Notes under the pieces: generated by a model | Told to the model about the DNA's origin: nothing | What the model saw: only the letters and a program-made list of their open reading frames with translations | The model's database searches: none | Part shown: piece by piece, positions 2,199-63,929 of the stretch | Layout of the letters: each line of letters starts with the position of its first letter | Numbering within the stretch: the first letter of the stretch is position 1 | Program-made: the position numbers and the translations under genes | NCBI GenBank assembly: GCA_002189035.1 | Contig: CM007992.1 | Span: forward strand, 3,100,001-3,164,000 | Source: Utricularia gibba | Taxonomy: Eukaryota > Plantae > Magnoliophyta | Reading direction: 5' to 3' | Length of the DNA: 64,000 bases

Positions 2199-3628
2199 CT
2201 CCGATCACACACTAATCCTCCAGCTTCTCCGGTGGAGTGTGATTGGGATCAGATTCAGGAATTCGTGGATTTGACTAAATAAGGAGCAGTTGCAATGACG
2301 CGTAGCGGACGGACGGACCTTTCTATCTGTTGGCCAAAAATAAAATAAAATAAAATAAGGCCTTGACTTTGACATTTTCAATAGTTTACTTTTCGCTTTA
2401 TTTTTCGTTCATTTAGGAATTAGGGTTTAACATTCTCCTGAATCCATCAGTCTTGGAGAATGTTTATATTGAAAAAAATAATATTTAATATTTAAAATTC
2501 ACTATCTTTTTAAAATATATATTAAAAAATTGTTGTACTATTTATATTCTATAACATGGTTTTCGTCTTATAATATAATTGTGTACCATTATTATTATAT
2601 TATATTATATTATATGTTAATATGGAGTATTGGACCATTTGAAAGATTGGATATCAATTCAATTCTCTATTCAATATTAGTAGGATTGACAAAAGTCTAT
2701 GGTGGCTTGGTAAAAAAATAATATTATTTAAATTATTTGAATTTAAATAAATAGTATAAAAATATTTATTTATAATGGTATGTTTGATAGATGATTTGCC
2801 ATTATTTGAATTTATAAAAAATATGCACTTAGTATAATTATTTAGAAATAAAAATTTATATATAAACCATGAAATATTTAGTCTTTTTTTGAAATAACAG
2901 CCAGCTTTATTATTAAATACGAATGAATTTAATTCTAAAAAATTTAGATATTTAGAAGTATTTTTTATTTTTTTAAAAGCTAAAAAGCTCTAATTTCTAA
3001 TTTTTCAAAAATATTTATTATTCAATACATTATATAAAACAAATGTTAAAAACCCGTATTTTTGAAAATCTAACATATCAAAAATACATTTTGATTTCTA
3101 AACCTATATGTATAATAAACATGATCTATGCACACACTTAATTTAAAGCATATATTACAATAAAATTCGATATTTGACAACTACCAACATGATTTCCTGG
3201 CATAATGACAACACATCCATCCTTAAATTTTGGATTCTTTTTGTATTGTATTTGTTTTTTTATATTATTAAATCAGAAAGGTAAAGAAGTACAAGTTGTT
3301 TTATTTATTATTTCTTTGATTAATCTGTATGGCTTCAAAGTCAAATGTAAGAATGCGAGCATACACACATTGGGTATTTTGGATAACTTTTGTTATATTT
3401 TAAAATTATAACTATAAAAATTATTTTTTAAAAAGTAAATAATTATTTATTTTTAACTTTTATTTTTACTTTTTAAAAATAATTTTAAAAAGTAAAAATA
3501 TGTTTTAAAAATTTTAGATAACAGTAATTTAGTTTTCAAATGAGTAGAAGAGCGGATGATTCCTTTCCAAAAGACCCATCGAGATGGCGGGAAGAGGATG
3601 CGCCCCCTTCATCTGGTTCTGGTAATCC

Positions 3629-4815
3629 CCTTCTTCTTGCCTTTCACATGCTTCCCCAACCTCCTGATCCTACGGCGAAGAGGGAGCGCAGGTACGCCAA
3701 AGAACTTCTTCTTCTTGCCTTTCACATGCTTCCCCAACCTCCTGATCCTACGGCGAAGAGGGAGCGCAGGTACGCCAAAGAACTTCTTCTTCTTGCCTTT
3801 CACATGCTTCCCCAACCTCCTGATCCTACGGCGAAGAGGGAGCGCAGGTACGCCAAAGAACTTCTTCTTCTTGCCTTTCACATGCTTCCCCCCTCCTGAT
3901 CCTACGGCGAAGAGGGAGCGCAGGTACGCCAAAGAACTTCTTCTTCTTGCCTTTCACATGCTTCCCCAACCTCCTGATCCTACGGCGAAGAGGGAGCGCA
4001 GGTACGCCAAAGAACTTCTTCTTCTTGCCTTTCACATGCTTCCCCAACCTCCTGATCCTACGGCGAAGAGGGAGCGCAGGTACGCCAAAGAACTTCTTCT
4101 TCTTGCCTTTCACATGCTTCCCCAACCTCCTGATCCTACGGCGAAGAGGGAGCGCAGGTACGCCAAAGAACTTCTTCTTCTTGCCTTTCACATGCTTCCC
4201 CAACCTCCTGATCCTACGGCGAAGAGGGAGCGCAGGTACGCCAAAGAACTTCTTCTTCTTGCCTCCTGATCCTACACATGCTTCCCCAACCTCCTGATCC
4301 TACGGCGAAGAGGGAGCGCAGGTACGCCAAAGAACTTCTTCTTCTTGCCTTTCACATGCTTCCCCAACCTCCTGATCCTACGGCGAAGAGGGAGCGCAGG
4401 TACGCCAAAGAACTTCTTCTTCTTGCCTTTCACATGCTTCCCCAACCTCCTGATCCTACGGCGAAGAGGGAGCGCAGGTACGCCAAAGAACTTCTTCTTC
4501 TTGCCTTTCACATGCTTCCCCAACCTCCTGATCCTACGGCGAAGAGGGAGCGCAGGTACGCCAAAGAACTTCTTCTTCTTGCCTTTCACATGCTTCCCCA
4601 ACCTCCTGATCCTACGGCGAAGAGGGAGCGCAGGTACGCCAAAGAACTTCTTCTTCTTGCCTTTCACATGCTTCCCCAACCTCCTGATCCTACGGCGAAG
4701 AGGGAGCGCAGGTACGCCAAAGAACTTCTTCTTCTTGCCTTTCACATGTTTCCCCAATCTCCTGATCCTACGGCGCAGAAGGGGCACCGGAATGATAGGT
4801 ATTCCAAAGAACTTC
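3629..4815. repeat. 78-bp minisatellite, 15 units, derived from the OXA1 terminal exon
   Basis: Anchor ctttcacatg (or its altered equivalent) at 3641, 3719, 3797, 3875, 3951, 4029, 4107, 4185, (4271), 4349, 4427, 4505, 4583, 4661, 4739; one -2 unit (~3890) and one +8 unit (~4265); minus-strand translation RRRIRRLGKHVKGKKKKFFGVPALPL. Confidence 0.97.
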
Positions 4816-5373
4816 TTGAAGGCAGGCTTCCTCGCAGCTCAATCGAAAGAGTCGGTTCTGGGTTGTAAGAACAGGTCAGGACACTCAAGGATCAAAATGA
4901 GGATGGAGGGAGGCAACAGTTACCATATCCAAATGCGACTGAGAAGAGGTTGAAGGGAACCCATAAGCAGAAAATCGCCTGCAGGGAGAGCAGAGGATGC
5001 TTCAGTGTGAAAAGTAACCATAGTAAGTGTAAAATTTTATTTTTACTGTATGAATAAAATGTTATGATGGTTATTTTTCAAAACAATCCAAAGTGGGTGA
5101 TTTGAAAAGTAATCATTTTAAATGTAAAATTTAGTTCTTATTTTGTGAGAGATAATGTGAAGAAGATTACTTTTCAAAGTAACCGTAAATAAATTGAGTA
5201 GAACAAATGGGAGTCACCTTTGGTAAACCTATAGTTAGTGGGACGGTAAGAGCAGCAAATACTCTTTGAGATCATCATGACACGATCAGCAGTGGGATTT
5301 CCTTTTAGACCCTCCAGAAGATTCAACTCAAAGAGGCCACCGGCCAAATATGACATCAGTTGAAACCAGAAGA

Positions 5374-5648
5374 TATAAGATCATATTCAGTGGTTTTCCG
5401 AAAACTACTATTATTTTTACACTAATGAATAATTTGGGGAAATCTCATTTTATGGAAACAAAAAAAAAAAACAAAATCTCGTTTTCTTGTGGAAAATATA
5501 ATTTTGTAAATAAACTTCACTTCATATATTTTCTATAATTTTTCTATTCATTTTCAGAAATTAATTAATTAAATTAGAAAACTTTGTAAAGAAAATTTAA
5601 TTAAAAAAACACACATCATCATTTCTGAAAATCAATAAAAATGTTCTT
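5374..5648. mobile_element. Possible Mutator-like MITE in intron 6 of the OXA1 pseudogene
   Basis: ~275 bp AT-rich segment absent from the paralogous intron (11040-11130); flanked by 9-bp accagaaga (5365-5373, 5649-5657); imperfect ~30-bp TIRs aagatcatattcagtggttttccgaaa / revcomp aagaacatttttattgattttcagaaa, with the left TIR offset 3 nt. Confidence 0.45.
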
Positions 5649-8345
5649 ACCAGAAGACGTGGAGTAAAGAGATAAAATGGGTACCTCAACTGCGATCAGA
5701 GATGTCAATGCTGTCAAAACCGGAAAAATGCACAAGCTATCTGGTGTTGTCAAATCGGTGAACCATAAAATGCCACCCTCTTTGAAAGATGGCATCTTTT
5801 CAGCCATAGTTCTTACCTGAGGCGATTCAGCAAAATGGACGGCTCCATTGGTACAAGAAACATTTTCAAAGCAGAAAGTGTCAAAGGAAGGGACATGTGA
5901 TCTTACTGCAAAGAAGAGACTGGAAATAATGAGACCTGACACCAGCATTCCTTTGGAAGGGGCCAAAGGAGATACACCGTGCCTGCAGCATAATTACCAC
6001 AAACCAAAAATACTAAACATTCAAAGTGCATTTGGGATTAAAACAATTATGAAGCAGGCCATGCCAAGTACTCGGCAGCACTTTTTTGATCAGCAAATAG
6101 CAAGAATGAATATGATAGATACTGTTTAAAAAGAGCTTTCTGTTGCGCCTGGCGTTCATCCATGCCAATATCCTGCTAAACAACCAGCTGGTATGAAAAT
6201 CAGGAGTCTGAGCCAACAGCATGAATATTCGAGGCCGTACAGGAATCACAAGCAAAAAATGGCCATATCGCATAAATTATGAGGCAGCCTAAAAAAGGAC
6301 AGCATACACTATACAGCCAATTAAGCCTACTGTCCGCATGGAGAGAAAGAAGTGCAAGAATCCTACCTTGATCTCCCAGTCTTTTTGTAGTTTTTCCAGG
6401 TCTAATCTCATAAGCTGTCAAACAAAAACAGGCAATTACGAGCAGAAAAAAAAAAAAAAAACAGCAAAGAAGTGGTACAGTTCTTCTCCAATTTTCAGCA
6501 TATGAATAGAGTTATCTAGAAGTATGAATTTCAAAATATTCGTTTGAAGCCAGAATCTAGAGAATACATCTAAAAATGATGCCTAGAAACTGGTCTGAAC
6601 AGGACTTACAATTGATTTTGAAGTGACTTTTAGCATATGTATCGAGATTGGAAGTTGAAGTAGGCGAATAAAGATAGTTGTCAGAGCAACAGCTGCTCAC
6701 CTGAACATACACATACGATTGCTTACACTGCTAATCCATGAGCATTTTTTAAGCTCAGAAACAAAAAAGAAGAAGAATAACAAGGAGTAGATTGAAAACA
6801 TAAATACATCAAAACAACCCCCTAACATGTAGTGCCGTTAACATTATCATGAACTGAAGATACAAGGCTTTTTAAAGGTTGATTCGGACCCCTAATTGGC
6901 CAGCTTCTCAGTTTTTCAAAAAAGCAAGTTTAACCAGCGCTCAACATGTCTTTAAAAATATTAAAATTGCAATTGAATACGGCCCAAAGTGGCCCAGCAG
7001 TGGTCTTTAACAATAATGAAAAATGTAGAGCCTAAACATAAGCTAGTCTAAGAAAAGTTCAAACCAAAGATTGAAGCAAAAAACTTTCTTGAAAAAAACA
7101 GCCCAGAAATCCATATTTAGATTGTATGTTCATGCTGAAAATTGAAAAATGAACCCACCAATTGAGCCCTGCATAAACGTGAACATAATCAATCAAGTAT
7201 TGAACCGCTGCCACAGGAAAATATGAATCAGCTGCAGAAACCGCCACCTCATTCACCAACGGAGCTGCCTGTGCAGCCAACTCCGTACCCTTATATTCCA
7301 AAACATTTGCCACTTCACTCAAAACAGGAAGATCTCCAGAAGCTTCAGAAACACTCCCGCTTGAGAAATTTCTATGAAAAACAAGTCCTGACCCTAATGA
7401 GTAGGGGGATTCCCGTATCTTGAAAGAAGCTTCTAGCTCTGTGAGTGACACCAAAACTATTTATTGATCCAAATGCACTTCTATGAAGATACTGAAACGT
7501 TTCAGGATTCCTGGAAATGGGATGTCTATGCAATTCTTCGTGATCATGGCTTTCCCGGTGAAGATGAGACAAGTATGCGCCAGCCTGATGACCCTGCTGG
7601 TAGAGTAGTTTCGCTCGACAAGTAATGCTTCTTCTATACGCCATTTACTTTATCCCCTACACATGCACGAATGGAATACGAAGAAAAACGGATTACAAAT
7701 ATTTCAGTGAGGAGATTAGAAATCTCCGATGAGAATAGCAGTCATCCAACATGAAAAGCTTAGAAACTAATCCACCACAAAAAAATGCAAACATCACACA
7801 GGGTATGGACACAAGATTTCCAAGGCTTCTGTGTTCGAGAGATCCAAATTTGCATCCAGGATGCTTATTAACAAAATTCAAAAGACTTTTATCTAAAAAA
7901 GTCACATTTTTTAGCAGTTTAGAGATCAGAATCATATTTTTAATTAGAATACTTAGGATCATCAAATGTTCCAAATCGTAATTCAAGTTCATCCAAAATC
8001 AGCATTAAATGTAAAGAACTGTGATTGGAAAAGCAAGAACCAAATAACCCCAACTTCTCTGTCATATCCACCATCGCCAAACCCTTACCAGCATTCCGAC
8101 AAAGTCACAAAAGTAAATCCCAAAAACCACACGAATGCTCTCAAAAACCCCAATTTCCAAACTACCCAGATAGTTATCTCCAATATTGAATAAAAACATC
8201 GAAAGGGAGTCCCCCTCGTTCTAACCTTCTCCTGGGTGGGATGTTTGTGACTGAAGAATCTTCCCTGAAGCCACCAACGGTTTCCCTTTATAGGATCCAT
8301 TTCCCAAAATCTTATTAAATATTAAGGTCATAGCATGTCAACAAA

Positions 8346-8405
8346 GGGGTGTGTCGCGCTCGCTTCGCATGCGAGAGGCATGGGGTTCCGTTCCCTGCAC
8401 CTCCA
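8346..8405 (+). pseudogene. Degenerate tRNA-Ala(CGC) copy
   Basis: Matches 13792-13864 but the D-arm/A-box is deleted, the B-box reads GGTTCCGTTCC, and the T-run terminator is shortened to ctttc. Confidence 0.9.
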
Positions 8406-8868
8406 CTTTCTGTTGGGCTCTGTAATTCTGTTCTTCTCAAATCTCACGTGCTAGAGAGTAGAGAAGCTATGCTCAACTCAGATCACGTCCTGCTGCACTC
8501 ACTTTTTCTCGTTTAGATCAGCTCTTCTCACTTTGGGATTCACCTCGATGCTTATAAGCTCACCCGTTTTCTCTGACGCATGTCTAGACAGATTGAACCA
8601 GAGTCGCCAACTCAGGTATGGGAATGCCTCCATGAGTTGAATAAAAAGAGAGATGGTATTTTTTCACAGATAGGAGTGGATGATTTTAGGTGCATTGTAT
8701 GCAGAAAAGAGCAATTCTGTGAACATATATACAAGGCCCTTAATCTTATATCAAATGCTATGTGCATATCACATTCACATTCCAAAACGTTTCAGGGAAA
8801 ATACTATGGGGATATAAAACTTTCAGCGGCAGAGAATAGATGTATATAGATCGAGGAAACGGAGGTCA

Positions 8869-9582
8869 TCAAGCTTGTGGAGCTGGAGTGCTTTCATTAG
8901 CAGCTTCAGGATATCATGTTCTGGGGCGGTCGAGGAGGCTTTGTAAGTGCTGCACCAGCCTTCCTTTGCCCTGCTGATGATGCTCTTTCCCTCCACCTTC
9001 GTCCATCCTGATGGATAACCAAGCACAAAGAAGAGTTCAAGCAGAATCATTTACAAAAACTCCACTGATGATGAACATCGGGTTTAAAGAGGGAATTCCA
9101 AGGTAGCTTGCAGGTGATTCAGGTACCAATCTACCATGCAAACTAAGGTGGGAACAAGCATCATAAGCACTTATATTGAGAATAGAAGAATCTGGGGATG
9201 GACATTGGATAGGTTGATCATTGTCAAGAGGCTCACTTGGGCGCTTAACAGGCTTAAATTCGGCAGCAACTTCGATTCCACGAGGAGATGCAGATTGTGC
9301 TACGCCCTCGCTACGGTTCGACTGTGAGCCAGAAGGCAACCCTTTTCTTTCAATCTGCAATTCCAAGAGATACAACACCAAAAATAAATAAATCCCTGAA
9401 ACCAGATCAAAAGCTGGAGATAAACCCAGGCAGATTGGTCCTTCATCTAATCAAATCAAATTCACAGCGAGATCACCAACAAGGAATTCCCAATACAACA
9501 CAAAATAACCAGAAATGATCATGGAACCAATAAATATATAAAACAGAATGATGGGGAAGTTGGGTTACGAGCGCGCTCTGAG
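8869..9582 (-). pseudogene. Pseudogene copy of the small uncharacterised gene at 14281-15199
   Basis: Start codon and most of exon 1 replaced at 9582; exon-2 donor GT>AT (~9174); ~30-bp deletion in exon 3 (~8926). Confidence 0.88.
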
Positions 9583-9630
9583 TTTGAAGCTTACTGCCGA
9601 CTTGATGGACAGGGGAGTCACTCCATTCAA
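9578..9630 (+). other. 53-bp fragment of UGT85 exon 1 captured at the duplication junction
   Basis: 52/53 identical to 21131-21183. Confidence 0.9.
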
Positions 9631-9643
9631 GAATAGGCAGATT

Positions 9644-10020
9644 CCCCTACACATGCACTAATGGAACACGCAGAGAAACAGATTACCAAGATTGCTGGTA
9701 GAGTAGTTTCGCTCGACAAGTAATGCTTCTTCTATACGCCATTTACTTCATCCCCTACACATGCACGAATGGAACACGCAGAAAAACAGATTACAAATAT
9801 TTCAGTGAGGAGATTAGAAATCCCCGATGAGAATAGCAGCCATTCAACATGAAAAGCTTAGAAACTAATCCACCACAAAAAAATGCAAAATCATGCAGGG
9901 TATGGCCACAAGATTTCCAAGGCTTCTGTGTGTCGAAAGACCCAAATTTGCAACCAGGATGCTTATTACCAAGAATCAAAAGACTTTCATAAAAAAAAGT
10001 CACATTTTTTACTGCTATTT
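9644..10020 (-). pseudogene. OXA1: Third, 5'-only OXA1 fragment (upstream/5'UTR region plus first 17 codons)
   Basis: ATG at 9742 reads MAYRRSITCRAKLLYQQ then SW*; upstream sequence matches 13028-13290; 44-bp local duplication 9644-9687 vs 9752-9795. Confidence 0.85.
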
Positions 10021-10390
10021 GTAATAATAAACCTGATCTAATGTACAGACTTAATTTAAAGCATAGATTATAATAAAATTCGACATTCAGCATCTACATA
10101 CATTATTTAGTGACATAATGAGAACACATCGGTCCTTAATTTTGGATTTTTTTGTATTATATTTGTTTCTTTATTGTTATAAAATCAGGAAGGTGAGAGA
10201 GAAGTCCAAGTTCTTTTGTTTATTGTTTCTTTGATTGATCTGTGTGGCTTCAAAGTCAAATGTAAGAATGCGACCGTAATCACATCCTAAAGCAATAACA
10301 CAGGCCTATTCCTTGCTCCTTTTTTTTTTTTATGGAAATCCAAAAAAAGAACACCACCTGCTTGGGATGGCGGGAAGAGGATGTGCCCCC

Positions 10391-13027
10391 TCATCTGGTT
10401 CTGCTAATCCCCTTCTTCTTGCCTTTCACATGCTTCTCCAAGCTCCTGATCCTATGGCTAAGAGGGGAGGACACACCAGGCGTTGTTTCAGTCGCAGTCG
10501 CCGTCGCTTTTCCGACATGGGGTGCCTGAGGTGTCTGTGGAGATGGCGGCAACTGAGGCATCTTGGGGAAGAATGAGAAGGCGGAGCTCTTCATGGCAGA
10601 GGGAGGGGCACTGGTATGATAGGTATGCCAAAGAACTTCTTGAAGGCAGGCTTCTTCACAGCTGAATAGGAAGAGTCGGTTCTTGGTTGTAAGAACGGGG
10701 CAGGACATTTAAGAATCAAAATGAGGTTGGAGGGAAGCAAGCAATAGTTACCATATCCATATGCGAGTGAGAAGAGGTTGGAGGGAACCCAGTAGCAGAA
10801 AATCGCCTGCAGGGAGAGCAGAGGATGCTTGAGTGTGGAAAAATTGGGTAGAACTTCTGGCTACAGCTTAGTAGAGAGAGCAAATGGCAGTCACCTTTGG
10901 GAAGCTTAGCGTTAGTGGGACGGTAAGAGCAGCAAATACTCTTGAGATCATCTTCACCGGACCAGCAGTGGGATTTCCTTCTAGACCCTCTTGAGCGTTC
11001 AACTGAAAGTGGCCACCGGCCAAATATGACATCAGTTATAACCAGCATGCTGGAATTCGTATCTAGCTTGGTTTAGTTAATCAGATTCTTTGTGCAGAAG
11101 TCAGGAAGATACGCAGGAAATAGAGAAAATGGGTACCTCAACTGTGATCAGAAATGTCAATGCTGTCAAAACAGGAAAAATGTACAAGCTATCTGGTGTT
11201 GTCAAATCGGTGAACCATAAAATGCCACCCTCTTTGAAAGATGGCATCTTTTCAGCCATAGTTCTTATCTGTATGCAGCCCAAGAAGGCGATTCAGCAAA
11301 ATGGACGACTCCATTGGTACAAGAAACATTTTCAAAGCAGAACGTGTCAATGGAAGGGAAATGCCATCTTACTGCAAAGAAGAAACTGCAAAAAATGGGA
11401 CCCGACACCAGAATTCCTTTGAAAGGGGCCAAAGGAGTTACACCGTGCCTGCAACATAATTACCACAAACCAAAAATACTAAACATTCAAAGTACATTAG
11501 GAATTAAAAAAATAATGAAGTAGGCCTTGTCAAATACTCGGCAGCAGTTTTTTGATTAGTAAGTAGCAAGAATAAACATGATACATACTGTTTATAAAGA
11601 GCTTTCACTTGTGCCTGGCGTTCATACATGCCAATACCCTGTTAAACAAGAAGCTGGTATGAAAATCAGGAGTCTGAGCCAACAGGATGAATATTCTAGG
11701 TCATACAGGAATCACAAGCAAACAATGGCCATATCACATAAATTATGAGGCAGCCTAAAAAGGACAACATACACTATACAGCCAAATAAGCCTATTGTCC
11801 GCATGGAGAGAAAGAAGTGCAAGAATCCTACCTTGATCTCCCAGTCTTGTTGTAGTTTTTCCAGGTCTGATCTCATAAGCTGTGAAATAGAAACAGGCAA
11901 TTATGAGCAGAAAAAAAAAAAAAACAGCCAAGAAGTGGTGCAGTTCTTCTCCAGTTGTCAGGATATGAATAGAATTGTCTAGAAGTATGGACTTCAAAAT
12001 TTTTGTTTGAAGCCAGAATCTAGAGAATGCATTTGAAAATGATGCTAGAAACTGGTCTGAACATGACTTACAGTTAATTTTGAAGTGACTTTTAGCATAT
12101 GTATCGAGATTGGAAGTTGAAGCAGGCGAATAAAGATAGTTGTCAGAGCAACAGCTGCCCACCTGAACACATATGCGATTGCTTACACTGCTAATCCCTA
12201 AGCATCTTTTAAACACAGAAACAATAGCAAGAAGTAGATTGAAAATACAAGGCTTTTCAGGCGTTGATTCGGACCCCTAATTGGCCAGCGTCTCAGTTTT
12301 TCAAAAAAGCAACTTTAATCAGCGATCAGCATGTCTTTAAAAATATTAAAATTGCAATTGATTACGGCCCAAAGTGGCCCAACAGTGGTCTTAACGATAA
12401 TGAAAAATGAAGAGCCTAAACATAAGCTGGTCTAAGAAAAGTTCAAACCAAAGACTGAAGCAAGAAACTTTCTTGAAAAAAACAGCCCAGAAATCCATAT
12501 TTAGATTGCATGCTCATGCTGAAAATTGAAACATGAACCCACCAATTGAGTCCTGCATAAACGTGAACATAATCAATCAAGTATTGAAGCGCTGCCACAG
12601 GAAAATATGAATCGGCTGCAGAAACCGCCACCTCATTCACCAATGGAGCTGCCTGTGCAGCCAACTCCGTACCCTTATCTTCCAAAACATTCGCCACATC
12701 ATTCAAAACAGAAAGATCTCCAGAAGCTTCAGAAACACTCCCGCTTGAGAAATTTCTATGAAAAAAATGTCCTGACCCTAATGAGTAAGGGATTCCCCTA
12801 TCTTGAAAGAAGCCTCTAGCTCTGTGGGTGACACCAAAACTATTTATTGATCCAAATGCACTTCTATGAAAATACTGAAACGTTTCAGGATTCCTAGAAA
12901 TGGGATGTCTATGCAATTCTTCCTGATCATGGGTTTCCCGGTGAAGATGAGACAAGTAAGCGCCAGCCTGATGACCCTGCTGATAGAGTAGTTTCGCTCG
13001 ACAAGTAATGCTTCTTCTATACGCCAT
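10391..13027 (-). CDS. OXA1: Mitochondrial inner-membrane insertase OXA1-like, right copy; exons 13027-12543, 12162-12072, 11879-11832, 11638-11589, 11448-11373, 11268-11137, 11002-10895, 10806-10752, 10661-end; apparent -1 frameshift near 10605 (in-frame stop 10591; homologous tail ends 10391)
   Basis: Presequence-like MAYRRSITCRAKLL; motifs LNWWAAVALTTIFIR, MAEKMPSFKEGGILWFTDLTTPD, AQEGLEGNP, AIFCYWVPSNLFSL; tail HRIRSLEKHVKGKKK resembles the plant OXA1 C-terminus. Confidence 0.9.
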
Positions 13028-13791
13028 TTACTTTATCCCCTACACATGCACGAGTGGAACACGAAGAAAAACAGATTACAAATATTTCAGTGAGGAGATT
13101 AGAAATCCCCGATGAGAATAGCAGTCATCCAACATGCAAAGCATAGAAACTAATCCACCACAAAAAATGCAAAAATCACGCAGGGTATGGCACAAGATTT
13201 CCAGGGCTCCTGTGTGTCGAAAGACCCAAATTTGCAACCAGGATGCTTATTAACAAAAATCAAAAGACTTTCATCTAAACTGCTCATTTTTTAGCAGTTT
13301 AGTGATCAAAATCATATTTTTAATTAAAATACTTACGAACATGGAATGTTCAAAATCGCAGTTCAAGTTCATCGAAAATCAGCATGAAATCTAAAGAACT
13401 GCCATTGGAAAAGCAAGAACCAAATGACCGCAACTTCTCTGTCATAACCACCATCGCCAAACCCTTACGAGCATTTGGACAAAGTCACAAAAGTAAATCC
13501 CAAGAACCACACGATTGCTCTCAAAAACCCCAATTTCCAAACTACCCAGTTAGTTATCTCCAATATTGAATAAAAGCATCCAACGGGAATCCCCCTCGTT
13601 CTAACCTATCTCACCTTTACTGGGTGCGCGGAAACCACCAAATGTTTCCGTCTATGTGCAAGATCCAAGCGTAAGTTGCCAAAATCAAGTGATAGCTGGG
13701 CAACAACATGCCTTTGGCTTAATTGTATGGAGTTGAGGGTTTAAGGTTTTAATGTTTTATTACAAAATTAGTTAAAATGATATTCATATCA

Positions 13792-13864
13792 GGGGGTGTA
13801 GCTCATATGGTAGAGCGCTCGCTTCGCATGCGAGAGGCACGGGGTTCGATTCCCCGCACCTCCA
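13792..13864 (+). tRNA. tRNA-Ala(CGC)
   Basis: 73 nt; acceptor GGGGGTG/CACCTCC with G3:U70; anticodon stem CTCGC-TT-CGC-AT-GCGAG; intact A box and B box GGTTCGATTCC. Confidence 0.97.
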
Positions 13865-13865
13865 C

Positions 13866-13872
13866 TTTTTTT
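13866..13872 (+). terminator. RNA Pol III T7 terminator of tRNA-Ala
   Basis: TTTTTTT immediately after the tRNA 3' end. Confidence 0.85.
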
Positions 13873-14280
13873 GAGCTCTTTTCGTCTCAGGTACTAGAGA
13901 AGCTATGCTCAACTCAGATCAGGTCCTGCTGCACTCACTTTTTCTCTTTTAGATCAGCTCTTCTCACGTTGGGATTCCCCTCGATGCTTCCAAGTTCACC
14001 CCTTTTCTCTGAACAGATTGAACCAGAGTAGCCAACTCAGGTATGGGAATGCCTCCATGAGTTGAATAAAAGAGAGATGGTATTTTTTCACAGATAGGAA
14101 TGGAAGATTTTAGGTGCATTGTATGTAGATGAGCAACTATGTGAACATATCTACAAGGCCCTTAATCTTATATCAAATGCTATGTGCATCACATTCACAT
14201 TCCAAAACGTTTCAGGGATGGAAATATAAAACTTTCAGCGGCAGAGAATAGATTTATATAGATCGAGGAAACGGAGGTCA

Positions 14281-15199
14281 TCAAGCTTGTGGAGCAGGAC
14301 TGCTTTCATTAAGCAGCTTCAGGATATCATGTTCTGGGGCGCTGATGGAGGATACAATCATGCGATTTGGGGGCGGTCGAGGAGGCTTTGTGAGTGCTGC
14401 ACCAGCCTTCCTTTGCCCTGCTGATGATGCTCTTTCCCTCCACCTTCGTCCATCCTGATGGATAACCAAGCACAAAGAAGAGTTCAAGCAGAATCATTTA
14501 CAAAAACACCACTATGATGAACATCGGGTTTAAAGAGCGAATTCCAAGGTAGTTTGCAGGTGATTCAGCTACAAATCTACCATGCAAACTAAGGTGGGAA
14601 CAAGCATCACTACCAAAATCCGATTTTTGTTAACGCCCAAAAAACGAATATCACTACCGCAGATGACTACAAAGGTAGCAAGCATCATAAGCAATGAAAT
14701 TGAAATGATGGGTTAAAGTTCAATGAAGCTTACATTGAGAATAGAAGAATCGGGGAATGGACATTGGATAGGTTGATCATTGTCAAGAGGCTCACTTGGG
14801 CGCTCAACAGGCTTAAATTCGACAGCAACTTCGATTCCACGAGGAGATGCAGATTGTGTTACGCCCTCGCTACGGTTTGACTGTGAGCCAGAAGGCAACC
14901 CTTTTCTTTCATTCTGCAATTCCAAGAGACACAACAGGGAAGTAAATAAATCCCTGAAACCAGATCAAAAGCAGAATATAAACCCAGGCAGATTTCAGCG
15001 AAAGGGCCCTTCATCTAATCAAATCAAACTTACAGCGACATCACCAACAGGGAATTCCCAATACAACACAAAATATCCAGAAATGATCATGGAACCAATA
15101 AATATATAAAACAGAATGATGGGGAAGTTGGGTTACGAGCGCGCTCTGAGTTCTTCGGTGACCGCCGCCGCGCACAGAGAATCTTGAGAAAATACCCAT
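14281..15199 (-). CDS. Small uncharacterised plant protein (138 aa); exons 15199-15137, 14913-14734, 14454-14281
   Basis: In-phase GT-AG exons give MGIFSRFSVRGGGHRRTQSAL...GIEVAVEFKPVERPSEPLDNDQPIQCP...SILNDGRRWRER...SISAPEHDILKLL; recalled as a conserved plant family of unknown function. Confidence 0.85.
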
Positions 15200-15744
15200 T
15201 TTCGGTGCCACGAAAAGCGATTCTCGTTGTTCAATCGGAGATTTCACCGCAACTCTGTTTTATGGAACAAGAAAAAACTAAGAAACGCATCAGCTGCCTT
15301 GGCTTGCAACCTGGTTTTCCAGATTCGGTGGCTTCAGAAGCTGGCTCGACAATGATCATTTCCTTTTCTTTTCCCTATATTCTTTAAAAATCATTAATAT
15401 CTGTTTTATTGACCCAATCATGGAATACACCAATAGGAATATGAGACTTCATTAAATTTAAATATAACCGTCTTTAAAATAACATTTTATTTTATTGATG
15501 ATTGTGTAGATGTTTATGTGTAGTTGTTATGAAATAGACATAGTGACTTCCAAATGTAACCCCAGTTATAGTTTAATTGAGTAGTTGTTTGATTTTAGAA
15601 GTTTTAATGAGTACTCAAATTAAATCAATGCATCCAATCTTACATACCTTGATAAGAAATTAGATTCCATATTATAACATGTAGCATTCGATTGATTACT
15701 AGCTTTGGACGGATTAATTATATTTATAATTCTTGCACTCATGA

Positions 15745-18700
15745 CATATCTATTGGAAATATTGAGTTCCCTAAAAATTATTTTTTGATGATATCTAAAT
15801 TTTTTTACGTGCAATTTCCTGAGTAGTGCCAAAATATATTCTTAGTTTCTTTTTTATTCAATTTTCTTACTTTTTTTATTGTGCAAATCGAAATCAATTG
15901 GATTTTTTTTATGCCATACTACATTACTACTATATATACAAAATTGATCAAAATAATAAATTGATCAAAAAATTTAAAAAATAGATATAAATATATTTAC
16001 TTCATTAAATCAATGTTTTAAAATTATGGGTTAATTTTCTTTTTTCTGAATTTTTAAATATATATCTTATATAGATGATTAGTAACAAATATAAGATATT
16101 ATAAATATTTAATATATATATATATATATATTGATTATATATTAATAATTATATTTTTATATATTTATTTATATTGATATTAAAAGAATATTCATTTATA
16201 TTTAGATTATATCAAGGTTTTAAAATTATGGGTTCAACCCATGGTTTGATCTAGTTAGATTAGAACTCATATTTTCATGGGTTGTATCTAATTCAATTCT
16301 TTTAATTTAATTCTTTTTTCTGAATTTTTAAATATATATCTTATGTATATGATTAGTAACAAATATAAGATATTATAAATATTTAATATATATATATATT
16401 GATTATATATTAATAATTATATTTTATATATTTATTTATATTGATATTAAAAGAATATTCATTTATATTTATATTATATATTATTTGAATAATATATTGA
16501 ATGATTAAAATGATTTAATATAATTATATCAATTATTTATGTATATAAATATGTGTCTGTATATATATTTTTTGAATATTATATATATATATCTATATAT
16601 ATTAAATATTATATATATATATATTATTTGAATGATTAAAATGATTTAATATAATTATATCAATTGTTTATGTGTATATATATGTATGTATATATATTAT
16701 ATATACATACATATATATATTTGAATAAGATATTGAATAATTAAAATTATATATATATATATATATAACCTTCTATATTTTGAATATTTTCATACATTAA
16801 AGTATGATTTTATAATTATATTTTAATGAAATTTAATGAATCCGGATCAATTCATTTTAAAAAGGATTCAATCCAAAATCATAACAAAATGATTCAATAG
16901 ATTTAGCCTGTTTTTAAAACATTTCATTAAACTATCAAATTTATATTCTTATACAAAATCCTACTCAAAGAGATTGATGATGATGTTTGACTATGCATCA
17001 CCATGACATCTAACAATGAAAAAATTCAGTTTAACTCTGCTCATAAGATTTCATTTTTTATCTTTGATTTTTGATAGATCTTTGAAACCGAAGAAAGAAG
17101 ACCATAATATACACCATAACTTATCCTTTATCCCCTAATATAATAGTAATCCCAACAATACCATAATGCACATCCTTTCTCCACTCCTCATCCTAGATGA
17201 TGCGCAATACAAAACTCTACCCATCAACTATGAAGGGGTTGTGGGAGTTTTTTAAAGCACTCATCGATCATTTCATTATGATCCCTTTAATTAGATCATG
17301 TTTGTAGAAGAATACATGAGCACATGGTGACAATTGTGGTCTTTGACTATTATCATTTGTACAGTTATCTAATGTTATGGCTTGGCATAGTGAACATTCC
17401 ATCAATCTTTATTGGATGTTATGAAACATGTCTATTGGAAGTAGGGGTTTCGTAAAGATTATTTTCTAATGATATCTAAATCTTTTTACATGTAATTCTC
17501 TGAACAGTGCTAAAATATATTTTTAATTTCTTTTTTATCCACTTTTCTTTATTTTTATTGTGCAAATCAAAACCAAATGGATTTTTTTGTCATATTACAT
17601 TACTATTATATATATAAAGTTGATCGAAATGAAAAATTGATCGAAAAATTTAAAAAATAAATATAAATATATTTACTTCATTAAATGAATGTTTTAAAAT
17701 CATGGATTCAACCCATGGTTCTACTTATTAAATTCAAACACATATTTTCATGGGATATATATAATTCAATTCTTTTATTTTTATTTTTTTAATTTTTAAA
17801 TATATATTTTATATAGATGATTAATACCAAATATAAGATATATTATAAATATTTGATATATATATATATTTATTTATTATATCTTAATAATTATATTTGT
17901 ATATATTTATTTATATTGATCGTAAAAAATACTCATTTATACTTAGATTCTATATTATTTGAATGAGATATTGAATGATTAAAAATGATTTGATATAATT
18001 GTATAAATTGTTTATGTGTATATATATATATATTGAATATTTTCTATATATATATATTATTTGAATGATATATTGAATGATTAAAATGATTTAATATAAT
18101 TGTATCAATTGTTTATGTGTATATATATATATATAATTGAATATTTTCTATATATATATTATTTGAATGATATATTTATTTCATGATTAAAATAATTTAA
18201 TATAATTATATCAATTGTTTATATAGAATGATTAAAATGATTTAAAATAATTATATCAATTTTTTATGTATATATATATTGAATATTTTCCATATATATA
18301 TTATTTGAAAGGGATATTGAATGATTAAAATTATATATATATATATATATATAATTTTCTATATTTTGAATATTTTGATACTTTAAATATGATTTTATAA
18401 TTATATTTAATATTTTGATAAGTATAAATAAAATTTAATGAATCCAGTTTAATAGATTTTAAAAAGGGTTCAACTCAAAATCATAACAAAACGATTCAAT
18501 GGATTTAGCTCGTTTTTAAAACAATTCATTAAATTATCAAGTTTATATTTCTAATCCACATGATTCTTACACAAAATCCTACTCAAAAAAATTGATGATG
18601 ATGCTTAACTATGTGTCATCATGACATCCAACACTGAAAAAATTTGATTTAACTTCAATTACAAGATTTTATTTATTATCTTTGTTTTTTGATAAATTTT

Positions 18701-19045
18701 TTTTTTAAAAAAAAACCATAATATATATCATAATTTAATCTTTATCCTCTAATATAATAGTAATCCTAACAAAGTCATAATGCACATCCTTTCTACTCTC
18801 CTCATCCTGGGTGATGTGCAATACCAAACCATACCCATCAACTATGAAGGAGTTGCGAGAAGTTTTTAAAGCACTCATGGATCGTTTCATTCTAATCTCT
18901 TTGATTAGGTCATGTTTGTAGAAGAATATATGAGACCCTGGTAACAATTGTGGTTATTAACTATTGTCATTTGTGCAATTATCTAGTGTTATGCCTTGCC
19001 ATATTGAATATTCCATCAGTCCCTATTGGGTGTTATAAAATATGT
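15745..19045. repeat. Diverged ~1.65-kb tandem duplication of AT-rich DNA with nested ~100-bp and (TA)n subrepeats
   Basis: 15745-16030 resembles 17430-17710; 16790-17430 resembles 18370-19040; internal repeats at 16030-16200 vs 16300-16500 and 17960-18330. Confidence 0.8.
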
Positions 19046-19376
19046 TCCGATAATATTTATATTATTTTCATAGTTTTGGCTTCTTATTGAAGTTTCATGT
19101 TTTTATGCTTGGATATTTTTCCATTAGCTCATCAAATCAAGGATGTAATAACGCCTCAAATAGCTCTTCACTTAGTATTGTCCTTCTCTCGCTTGTACAA
19201 CATTCTCAATTCCCTCATTGCTACGTAGTCAGTATTGATTTCCAAAAACTTCTGATAAAGTACAAAAATGTTTCCTTATATATCTATATTCAAATCTAAT
19301 AAAAGTTCGATCTTTCTCATATTAGTTAAACGTAAGATTTGACTTTGGTTAGTTCTCCCATTTTGGAGAAATGCAT

Positions 19377-19607
19377 ATGTATGCTAATTTTGATATAAGA
19401 TTTTTTTTAAATATTGATTAATAAGATATTTAAATATTTATATGGATTTATTATATTATTATTAATTATAATAATAAATAATTAAATTAATGTATAAAAT
19501 TTTAAATTTAATTAATAATAAAATAATAAATCTATATATAAATATTTAAATATCATATTAATCAATATTTAAAAAAATCTAATATCAAAATTAATATACA
19601 CATACAT
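19377..19607. mobile_element. AT-rich foldback/MITE-like long inverted repeat
   Basis: Arm 19377-19467 pairs with arm 19510-19607 (roughly 90% over ~85 bp) around a ~42-nt loop. Confidence 0.75.
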
Positions 19608-19980
19608 GAATAATATAATTTTAATCTTAATGAAAAAAAGATAATTCTCACAATCATTAATAAAATTATAATTATAGAATTAAATGAGTTTATCGAGTAA
19701 TAATGTTTTATATAAATTTTTATTGTTTATTTTTAATACAAAAATTTATTAAATACATGTACATGCACCCATATATTTATTCCATTACGATGCTATCTCT
19801 TCCCCTTTTCTTACTTCGTATTCTGTGTAATCGAATATTGTAAATTTATGTAAAATAAGAGAATCTGCATCATTGTCTATAATAATTTTTTATAAAATAA
19901 AAAAGAGTAAAAGAAAAATTGTATTTAAAAAGGATTAGAATTTATTTATAAAATATTTATAAAAAAAAGTTATATTATTT

Positions 19981-20180
19981 ATACTCTTTTATCTTTGATA
20001 TTATTTATAGTAAAAAAAAGTTAGATATTTATACTTAAATTGAATTATCTTATTTTCATATTTAATTATGCAAAATATATATTAATAATTACTCTTTTAT
20101 CTTTGATATTATTTATAGTAAACAAAAGTTAGATATTTATACTTAAATTGAATTATCTTATTTTCATATTTAATTATGCT
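19981..20180. repeat. ~90-bp direct repeat, two copies, ~109-bp period
   Basis: tactcttttatctttgatattatttatagt...tttaattatgc at ~19982 and ~20091. Confidence 0.85.
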
Positions 20181-20404
20181 TTCATGCATAGAAATACCCA
20201 TTAAATTATTTAAATTAAGTATTAGAAATGTAATGAGACATCAAATTATATCTATTGGAATTGCCAAGTTTTATCAATTAATATTTTAAATTTAGTATTA
20301 ATATTTCAATTAATTAAATCATATTTTAATAAATTTACCTATAACTATACTAATGAATGAAATCTCTCTAAAATTACATAAAATTATTATTATATTCACT
20401 AATA

Positions 20405-63388: not shown

Positions 63389-63929
63389 TCAAGCTGGGCA
63401 CGGGTCCGACTCGACCCGCCGAGTAAAAAATGAAATGTCTGACTCGGTGGACACGGGTTGACGAGTTGGACAGCTTGACTCGTCCCAGGTCACGAGTTGA
63501 CACTACAATGATATGTTTACGGTGCCTGGAGAATATTGAAATCAGTATCTTCTAGACATTACAATTGCATGTTTGCGATACCTAGAGAATATTGAAGCAA
63601 CTGTCTTCCAAGCGCTACAATTATATGTTTGCGCAGTCTTAAGAACAATGAAGCTAATGTCTTCCAAGCACTATAATTGTATGTTTGCGATGACTGAAGA
63701 ACATTGAAGCCAATGTCTTCCAAATATTGTAATGGTATGTTTGCGATGCCTGAAAATATTGAAACTAGTGTTTTATAGAACTATTTTGGTTGACCCGCCG
63801 GGTCAACTTGTACCCATGCACAATCAACCCGTCCCGTACCCATTTTTGAAAATTACGGGTAACGGGTCGGACCCGTCACGAGTCAACCCACCGGATACAC
63901 GGGTCAACCCATATCTATACCCAGCTCTA
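63389..63929. mobile_element. Non-autonomous hAT-type element (MITE)
   Basis: 8-bp TSD CCTACTAT (63381-63388, 63930-63937); TIRs TCAAGCTGGG / revcomp TAGAGCTGGG; subterminal GACCCG/CGGGTC motifs. Confidence 0.85.
63505..63775. repeat. 56-bp tandem repeat, ~5 copies, inside the hAT MITE
   Basis: atgttt(g/a)c anchor at 63513, 63569, 63625, 63681, 63737. Confidence 0.9.

Follow-up and report, generated by a model that had tools for sequence, protein, structure and literature searches.

A 64,000-nucleotide stretch of the Utricularia gibba genome (assembly GCA_002189035.1, contig CM007992.1, positions 3,100,001 to 3,164,000 of the forward strand; hereafter the window, to which all coordinates refer) contains two neighbouring minus-strand copies of the OXA1 gene, and the terminal exon of the left copy carries a tandem array of a 78-bp unit. 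The copy that carries the array is an unprocessed pseudogene, and the array itself appears to be a very young minisatellite, most likely without function (probability about 0.8). The feature belongs to an ordinary type, and its main interest is an unusually traceable, step-by-step origin. Each step in the birth of the array is readable because the parent sequence survives 5.4 kb away, so that the locus offers a datable snapshot of the birth of a minisatellite.

Structure of the array

The array was called by Tandem Repeats Finder at 3630-4779, with a period of 78, 14.7 copies, 97% matches and a score of 2193. The call was refined by means of a unit table, in which the minus strand was split at every unit start. 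On the minus strand, positions 3630-4814 consist of one diverged unit of 87 bp (unit 0) followed by 14 units of 78 bp, approximately 1.2 kb in total. A previous reading of the same DNA, made from the letters alone (the sequence-only reading), had described a near-perfect array of 15 x 78 bp; the near-identity of the units stands, and the correct count is one unit of 87 bp and 14 of 78 bp. The features of this terminal exon, in the direction of the gene, are the following:

4815-4837, minus strand: first part of exon 9, the terminal exon of the left copy, with a GAG acceptor (CAG in the right copy)
4728-4814, minus strand: unit 0, the 87-bp founder-like edge unit (KFFGIPIIPVPLLRRRIRRLGKHVKGKKK), in which the linker is already absent
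3630-4727, minus strand: core array of 14 head-to-tail 78-bp units, each of 26 codons (KFFGVPALPLRRRIRRLGKHVKGKKK); 12 identical, one with +8 and one with -2
4264-4274, minus strand: templated +8 change, AAA to TAGGATCAGGA, in the 86-bp unit starting at 4337
3890-3893, minus strand: 2-nt loss (TT of GGAGGTTGGGG), in the 76-bp unit starting at 3939
3609-3629, minus strand: the original end of the OXA1 reading frame (GITRTR and the stop codon), immediately following the final unit, with 1 mismatch to the right copy

After unit 0, the units start at 4727, 4649, 4571, 4493, 4415, 4337, 4251, 4173, 4095, 4017, 3939, 3863, 3785 and 3707. Twelve of them are exactly the 78-bp consensus and the other two deviate from it by one indel each (+8 and -2); not a single point substitution is found across the 14 units (1,092 bp). 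Unit 0, on the other hand, departs from the consensus at 8 substituted sites and by an indel of 9 bp (about 10%). A unit in the range of about 10-100 bp, a head-to-tail arrangement, near-identical interior units and a more diverged edge are among the properties by which minisatellites are recognised, and these are present here. Edge units of arrays usually stay diverged, as unit 0 did. Thirteen matches to a 44-nt core of the unit lie in the array, one further match with 3 mismatches lies in the right paralog (10412-10455), and shuffled sequence contains none.

Translation of the minus strand gives AARKPAFKKFFGIPIIPVPLL, which runs in frame into six 26-residue units and then into RRRIRRLGKHV before a stop at 4274-4272. 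The reading frame is regained after the 2-nt loss, and the native end KGKKKGITRTR* is reached at 3609; in both respects the translation is exactly as had been claimed. The two indels are also as they had been described. At the +8 site, an 11-nt copy of the unit's own TAGGATCAGGA stands in place of AAA, the insert plus its flanks forms a second copy of the unit's GTAGGATCAGGAGG, and the stop codon TAG is created at 4274-4272. The template would have been a 13-nt stretch located 27 nt upstream, and the ends of the event show the microhomologies G and AGG. In this it resembles the templated insertions that are typical of template-switch end joining. It had been pointed out as well that +8 and -2 sum to +6; the arithmetic is right, but as evidence of selection it fails, since restoration of the frame has a 1-in-3 chance.

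Repeat-aware polishing can yield a pattern of identical units devoid of point substitutions, and it is conceivable that assembly or polishing created the array, or expanded and homogenised a short repeat, the true locus having one or few units. A hint of indel noise comes from two lesions of the left copy and from the frameshift of right exon 9 (both described below), which are located in or near short homopolymer runs. However, the array has internal landmarks that are rare in artefacts, namely the diverged 87-bp edge unit, the complex templated +8 change and the defined -2 change. Besides, its unique flanks align cleanly to the paralog on both sides, and neither N runs nor contig ends lie nearby. 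An artefact is considered unlikely on balance.

Origin of the repeat unit in exon 9

The repeat unit joins the KKFFG(I/V)P segment of OXA1 to the conserved basic tail RIRxLxKHVKGKKK, and the linker between them is gone. In exon 9 of the right copy, both halves of the unit are present in single copy (10638-10623 and 10466-10412) and are separated by a linker of about 150 nt rich in Pro, Ser and Thr. Unit bases 1-16 (AAGTTCTTTGG...) align to 10638-10623, which encodes the KKFFGIP segment, whereas unit bases 24-78 align to 10466-10412, the basic tail. Over 55-nt stretches, the array and right exon 9 have 93% identity.

The loss of the Pro/Ser linker, already proposed in the sequence-only reading, is reflected in the length of the terminal exon, which measures 271 nt in the right copy vs 131 nt in the left copy with the array collapsed, a net loss of 140 nt. 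Similar CCCTCT...GCC motifs flank the deletion on both sides; because both flanks carry such motifs and the copies have diverged, the breakpoints are ambiguous to the base.

The hexamer AAGAAG is found at both source sites, upstream in ttcAAGAAGttc and in the tail in ggcAAGAAGAAGggg, and also at the unit junction, ggcAAGAAGAAGAAGttc. The source sites in right exon 9 agree with the previous proposal that the unit fuses KKFFG and the basic tail at an AAGAAG microhomology, and the arrangement is the signature that a duplication bounded by short direct repeats would leave. Between the left and the right tails (4728-4771 vs 10412-10466) there are four amino-acid differences, S>R, H>R, S>R and E>G. 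One of the tail codons is AGA in unit 0, AGG in the array units and AGC in the right copy.

The two OXA1 copies

Comparison of 3300-9900 against 9900-15600 by BLASTN revealed a tandem segmental duplication of about 5.4 kb, in which 9584-3300 on the left matches 15152-10215 on the right with 86-97% identity, introns included. Each duplicated unit bears one minus-strand OXA1 gene. A Genlisea protein (P0018) was used as query to retrieve 661 plant OXA1 proteins, and the best 120 of these 661 are covered by the tail comparison described below. The exons were mapped with the retrieved proteins by tblastn, the splice sites were read directly, and the exons of both copies were then compared one by one. 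The right copy is organised as follows:

10391-13027, minus strand: right OXA1 copy, the parent-like paralog, with nine GT-AG exons located by tblastn and splice sites
13027-12543, 12162-12072, 11879-11832, 11638-11589 and 11448-11373, minus strand: exons 1-5 of the right copy
11268-11137, 11002-10895, 10806-10752 and 10661-10391, minus strand: exons 6-9 of the right copy

Exon 1 of the right copy matches OXA1 proteins from the Lamiales (Sesamum, Handroanthus, Rehmannia, Genlisea) with 40-60% identity, and the exons of both copies align to OXA1 proteins bearing PF02096 (Genlisea, Sesamum, Rehmannia and others). Single exons, which are too short, and the neighbouring open reading frame (ORF) gave no Pfam family.

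As assembled, exon 9 of the right copy is out of frame. In the KKPAFKKFFGIPIIPVPLPLP frame, PVPLPLP is followed by the TGA at 10593-10591. The conserved linker and tail (…SSAFSFF…SHRIRSLEKHVKGKKKGISRTR*) sit in a different frame (10591-10661 of the window). An indel of 1 nt between about 10612 and 10594 would account for this break. The break may be genuine, a recent truncation by which the ribosome-binding tail was lost, or it may be an error of the assembly. The bases matching this frameshift fall at the deletion junction of the left copy. The core of the left copy is interrupted and out of frame; the conserved basic tail is thus in frame with the core in neither copy as assembled. It is important to note, for the annotation of this genome, that neither of the OXA1 copies assembled here encodes a full-length protein with the conserved tail.

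Between the duplicated units, at 9643-10011, there is an extra fragment of the OXA1 promoter together with the first 17 codons (MAYRRSITCRAKLLYQQ at 9742-9692). This fragment is 95% identical to 13185-12978, and the junction of the duplication is therefore not a plain head-to-tail arrangement but something more complex. A tRNA-Ala(CGC) gene is located at 13792-13865 on the plus strand, upstream of the right copy (ARAGORN; Rfam, 65.6 bits); the corresponding position of the left copy showed no intact counterpart.

The left copy as an unprocessed pseudogene

Apart from its terminal exon, the left copy is represented by one feature:

4838-7644, minus strand: the rest of the left OXA1 copy, made up of exons 1-8 and their introns; unprocessed pseudogene

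Exon-by-exon DNA alignment to the right copy revealed three disabling lesions: one extra base in a C run of exon 1, near 7405; the change of TGG to TGA at the second codon position of exon 2 (6699-6697); and one extra base in an A run of exon 7, near 5267. Moreover, the acceptors of exons 7 and 9 have changed from C to G at position -3 (CAG to GAG), by which they are weakened. Any transcript of the left copy would be expected to carry premature stops.

In exons 1-8, left and right copies differ by 16 synonymous and 45 non-synonymous codon differences. When 12 outgroup OXA1 proteins were used to polarise the replacements at conserved sites, 25 of them were assigned as derived to the left copy and 2 to the right, while 18 could not be polarised. 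Given this 25:2 asymmetry, the core of the right copy has remained under purifying selection, and the left copy has drifted in a roughly neutral way since the duplication. Introns kept beside the parent, disabling lesions and relaxed constraint are the characteristics of an unprocessed pseudogene, and the left copy has all three. The suggestion that a satellite was born from the exon of a dead gene finds its support here, in the two frameshifts and the nonsense codon upstream of the array and in the 25:2 replacements.

Age of the expansion

The divergence (K) between the paralogs is 0.067 in the exons and 0.13 in the alignable introns. For the array, the 95% upper bound is 0.0027 substitutions per site per unit lineage (0 in 1,092 bp). 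This bound lies far below the paralog values; barring homogenisation or polishing, the burst to 14 copies falls within at most the last few percent of the time since the gene duplicated. This agrees with the previous proposal of a recent or homogenised expansion: 0 substitutions in the array stand against a difference of 6-13% between the paralogs. On the other hand, the first duplication of the 87-bp segment is old, possibly near the gene duplication in age, because unit 0 differs by about 10% from the consensus.

Coding potential of the repeat

In the tail comparison, the full-length OXA1 relatives end in ...SQRI[KR]SLEKEVKGRKKGKKR or a close variant, and their C-terminal region opens with KKPxVKKFLGIPIIPV. 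The tail motif occurs more than once in none of these 120 plant relatives. In yeast Oxa1, the positively charged C-terminal domain touches the rRNA of the large ribosomal subunit near the exit tunnel, and Arabidopsis Oxa1a and Oxa1b have a similar positively charged C-terminal domain (PMC5855863).

Related to this, the repeat could be, or could recently have been, translated, either as a polycationic peptide from a 3' transcript or as an OXA1 variant with a multivalent ribosome-binding tail. The unit corresponds to 26 codons, the first six units are in frame with KKFFGIP, and the early rearrangements preserved the frame. Furthermore, the repeated motif is the conserved basic end of plant OXA1, whose yeast counterpart binds large-subunit rRNA (PMC5855863), and the four replacements in the tail (4/4) add positive charge. 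If the repeat were translated, or had been until recently, selection rather than chance would lie behind the early steps that preserve the frame and the replacements that raise the charge.

However, the upstream exons contain two +1 frameshifts and a TGA, and the acceptor of exon 9 is weakened to GAG. In the polycationic frame there is no ATG within the array or within exon 9, and the only ATG of each unit immediately precedes TGA. Translation started at the ATGs of the frameshifted exon 7 would reach exon 9 in another frame and would be expected to stop within unit 0. An uninterrupted ORF is thus absent: there is no in-frame ATG, a stop breaks the array after six units, and the upstream exons are out of frame. 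To this must be added the neutral-like evolution of the left copy.

The protein searches revealed no relatives either. A word search of proteins with the 188-residue repeat ORF gave no match, and a full HMMER scan of 1.84 billion cluster representatives (E <= 0.001) gave no true relative of the repeat. Translation of the repeat is therefore regarded as highly improbable, and the polycationic repeat peptide that had been put forward from the sequence is not sustained, considering the lack of an ATG, the out-of-frame upstream exons, the weakened exon 9 acceptor and the lack of any relative in the searched databases. The array says nothing new about OXA1 function unless it proves to be expressed.

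Five matches of the HMMER scan were rejected, being unrelated repeat proteins that have in common with the query only a KxFFG(M/V)P-like word or its periodicity, and none of them is related to OXA1. Examples are precursors with a repeated KSFFGMP...GR and a protein with a PIPLHTHLLEISSHIITSPRSVLSLIP repeat. In the same way, the matches of Pfam and NCBIfam to the repeat ORFs (Ribosomal_S15 and LapA, sub-threshold) were rejected as compositional noise.

Non-coding function

An array without coding function might still be useful to the cell, as a length-variable element upstream of the next minus-strand gene or as a source of small RNAs against the OXA1 paralog. About 1.4 kb downstream of the end of the array lies the ATG of the next ORF (2198-1752), and antisense or small RNAs could cross-target right exon 9 through the 55-nt stretches at 93% identity. 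However, the sequence gives no hint of such a role, as neither an inverted copy, nor hairpin potential, nor an Rfam match is present, and the array is too young for conservation to show. A non-coding function is accordingly judged very unlikely.

With regard to these analyses, Rfam and tRNA scans gave no match in the array, and two units folded as single-stranded DNA no better than shuffled sequences (z = +1.05). Slippage driven by hairpins was considered as a mechanism of growth and, given this z value, it is not supported over unequal exchange.

Proposed sequence of events

The preferred reading, a functionless young minisatellite in a pseudogene, would involve six steps. First, the OXA1 gene would have been duplicated. 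The left copy would then have lost the linker, by a deletion between the two C/T-rich CCCTCT...GCC motifs, and afterwards the 87-bp segment would have been doubled through misaligned AAGAAG(AAG) runs. In the fourth step one of these two copies would have shed 9 bp and gained a few substitutions. Much later, unequal sister-chromatid exchange or slippage during replication would have multiplied the resulting 78-bp variant until 14 copies were present. Finally, two repair scars would have been added, the templated +8 insertion, with flanking microhomologies of 1-3 nt, and the 2-nt loss. Under this scheme, the copy number of the array is expected to differ between individuals, which is in practice the hallmark of variable-number tandem repeats.

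Several observations weigh against this reading. Three lengths are divisible by three, those of the first duplication (87 bp), of the deletion (9 bp) and of the unit (78 bp), and the loss of the linker keeps the tail in frame with KKFFGIP. If three independent events had taken place in dead DNA, the chance of such frame preservation would be about 1 in 27, a figure counted post hoc; these early steps may date from a time when the copy was still translated. All 4 replacements in the left tail raise the positive charge. The perfect identity of the units could stem in part from consensus polishing, and the copy number could likewise be affected by the assembly. Moreover, homopolymer runs are the site of two of the three disabling lesions (2/3), and these two might be errors of the assembly. 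Neither the TGA codon nor the 25:2 asymmetry depends on indels or is explicable as an assembly error of this kind, and the later +8 and -2 events clearly disregarded the reading frame.

Comparison with known systems

As in other minisatellites or variable-number tandem repeats (VNTRs), the unit has tens of bases, the copies lie head to tail, AAGAAG is found at the founder ends and the edge unit is diverged. What distinguishes this locus from them is that an intact-like paralog, at a distance of 5.4 kb, allows the founder to be followed at the level of single bases to two parts of a protein-coding exon. The association of tandem repeats with flanking microhomology has been reported, for example, in plant mitochondrial genomes (PMC7643612).

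Unprocessed pseudogenes are similar to the left copy in their location beside the parent, in their retained introns, in their frameshifts and nonsense codons and in the excess of replacements at conserved sites. However, most of them gather only small lesions, whereas the decay of the left copy adds about 1.1 kb of exon-derived repeat.

Antifreeze glycoprotein (AFGP) genes are another example of a short in-frame element amplified in tandem into a long repetitive ORF-like tract. AFGP loci also hold non-coding 'minisatellite-like' arrays and frameshifted pseudogenes (PMC6410882). Nevertheless, functional AFGP genes have a read-through ORF, a signal peptide and selection, whereas here the gene is dead and the array is interrupted.

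Finally, the repeated peptide contains the conserved basic end that is the counterpart of the yeast domain contacting the mitochondrial ribosome (PMC5855863), as in the tail of mitochondrial Oxa1. In contrast to that tail, in which the motif is present at most once per relative, here it is found 15 times, in a copy unable to make OXA1. The locus can be used as a teaching case and is probably a hypervariable marker in the species.

Neighbourhood of the locus

The next ORF downstream of the array lies at 1752-2198 on the minus strand (MAGEKFVVEVEPAKPAAEGRPSIGPVYRSIFAKNGFP…SCWDIFR). We take it to resemble the first exon of a long-chain acyl-CoA synthetase gene; neither Pfam nor NCBIfam had a match for it. 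One of the OXA1 relatives, from Capsicum, is named 'long chain acyl-CoA synthetase 4-like' in NCBI, which hints at a conserved adjacency. On the other side, a region at 16000-20200 with a G+C content of 19-20% and dense AT-rich tandem repeats of many periods divides the OXA1 duplication from the next genes. Another tandem repeat, with a unit of 56 bp, 4.7 copies and 76% matches, is located at 63500-63763.

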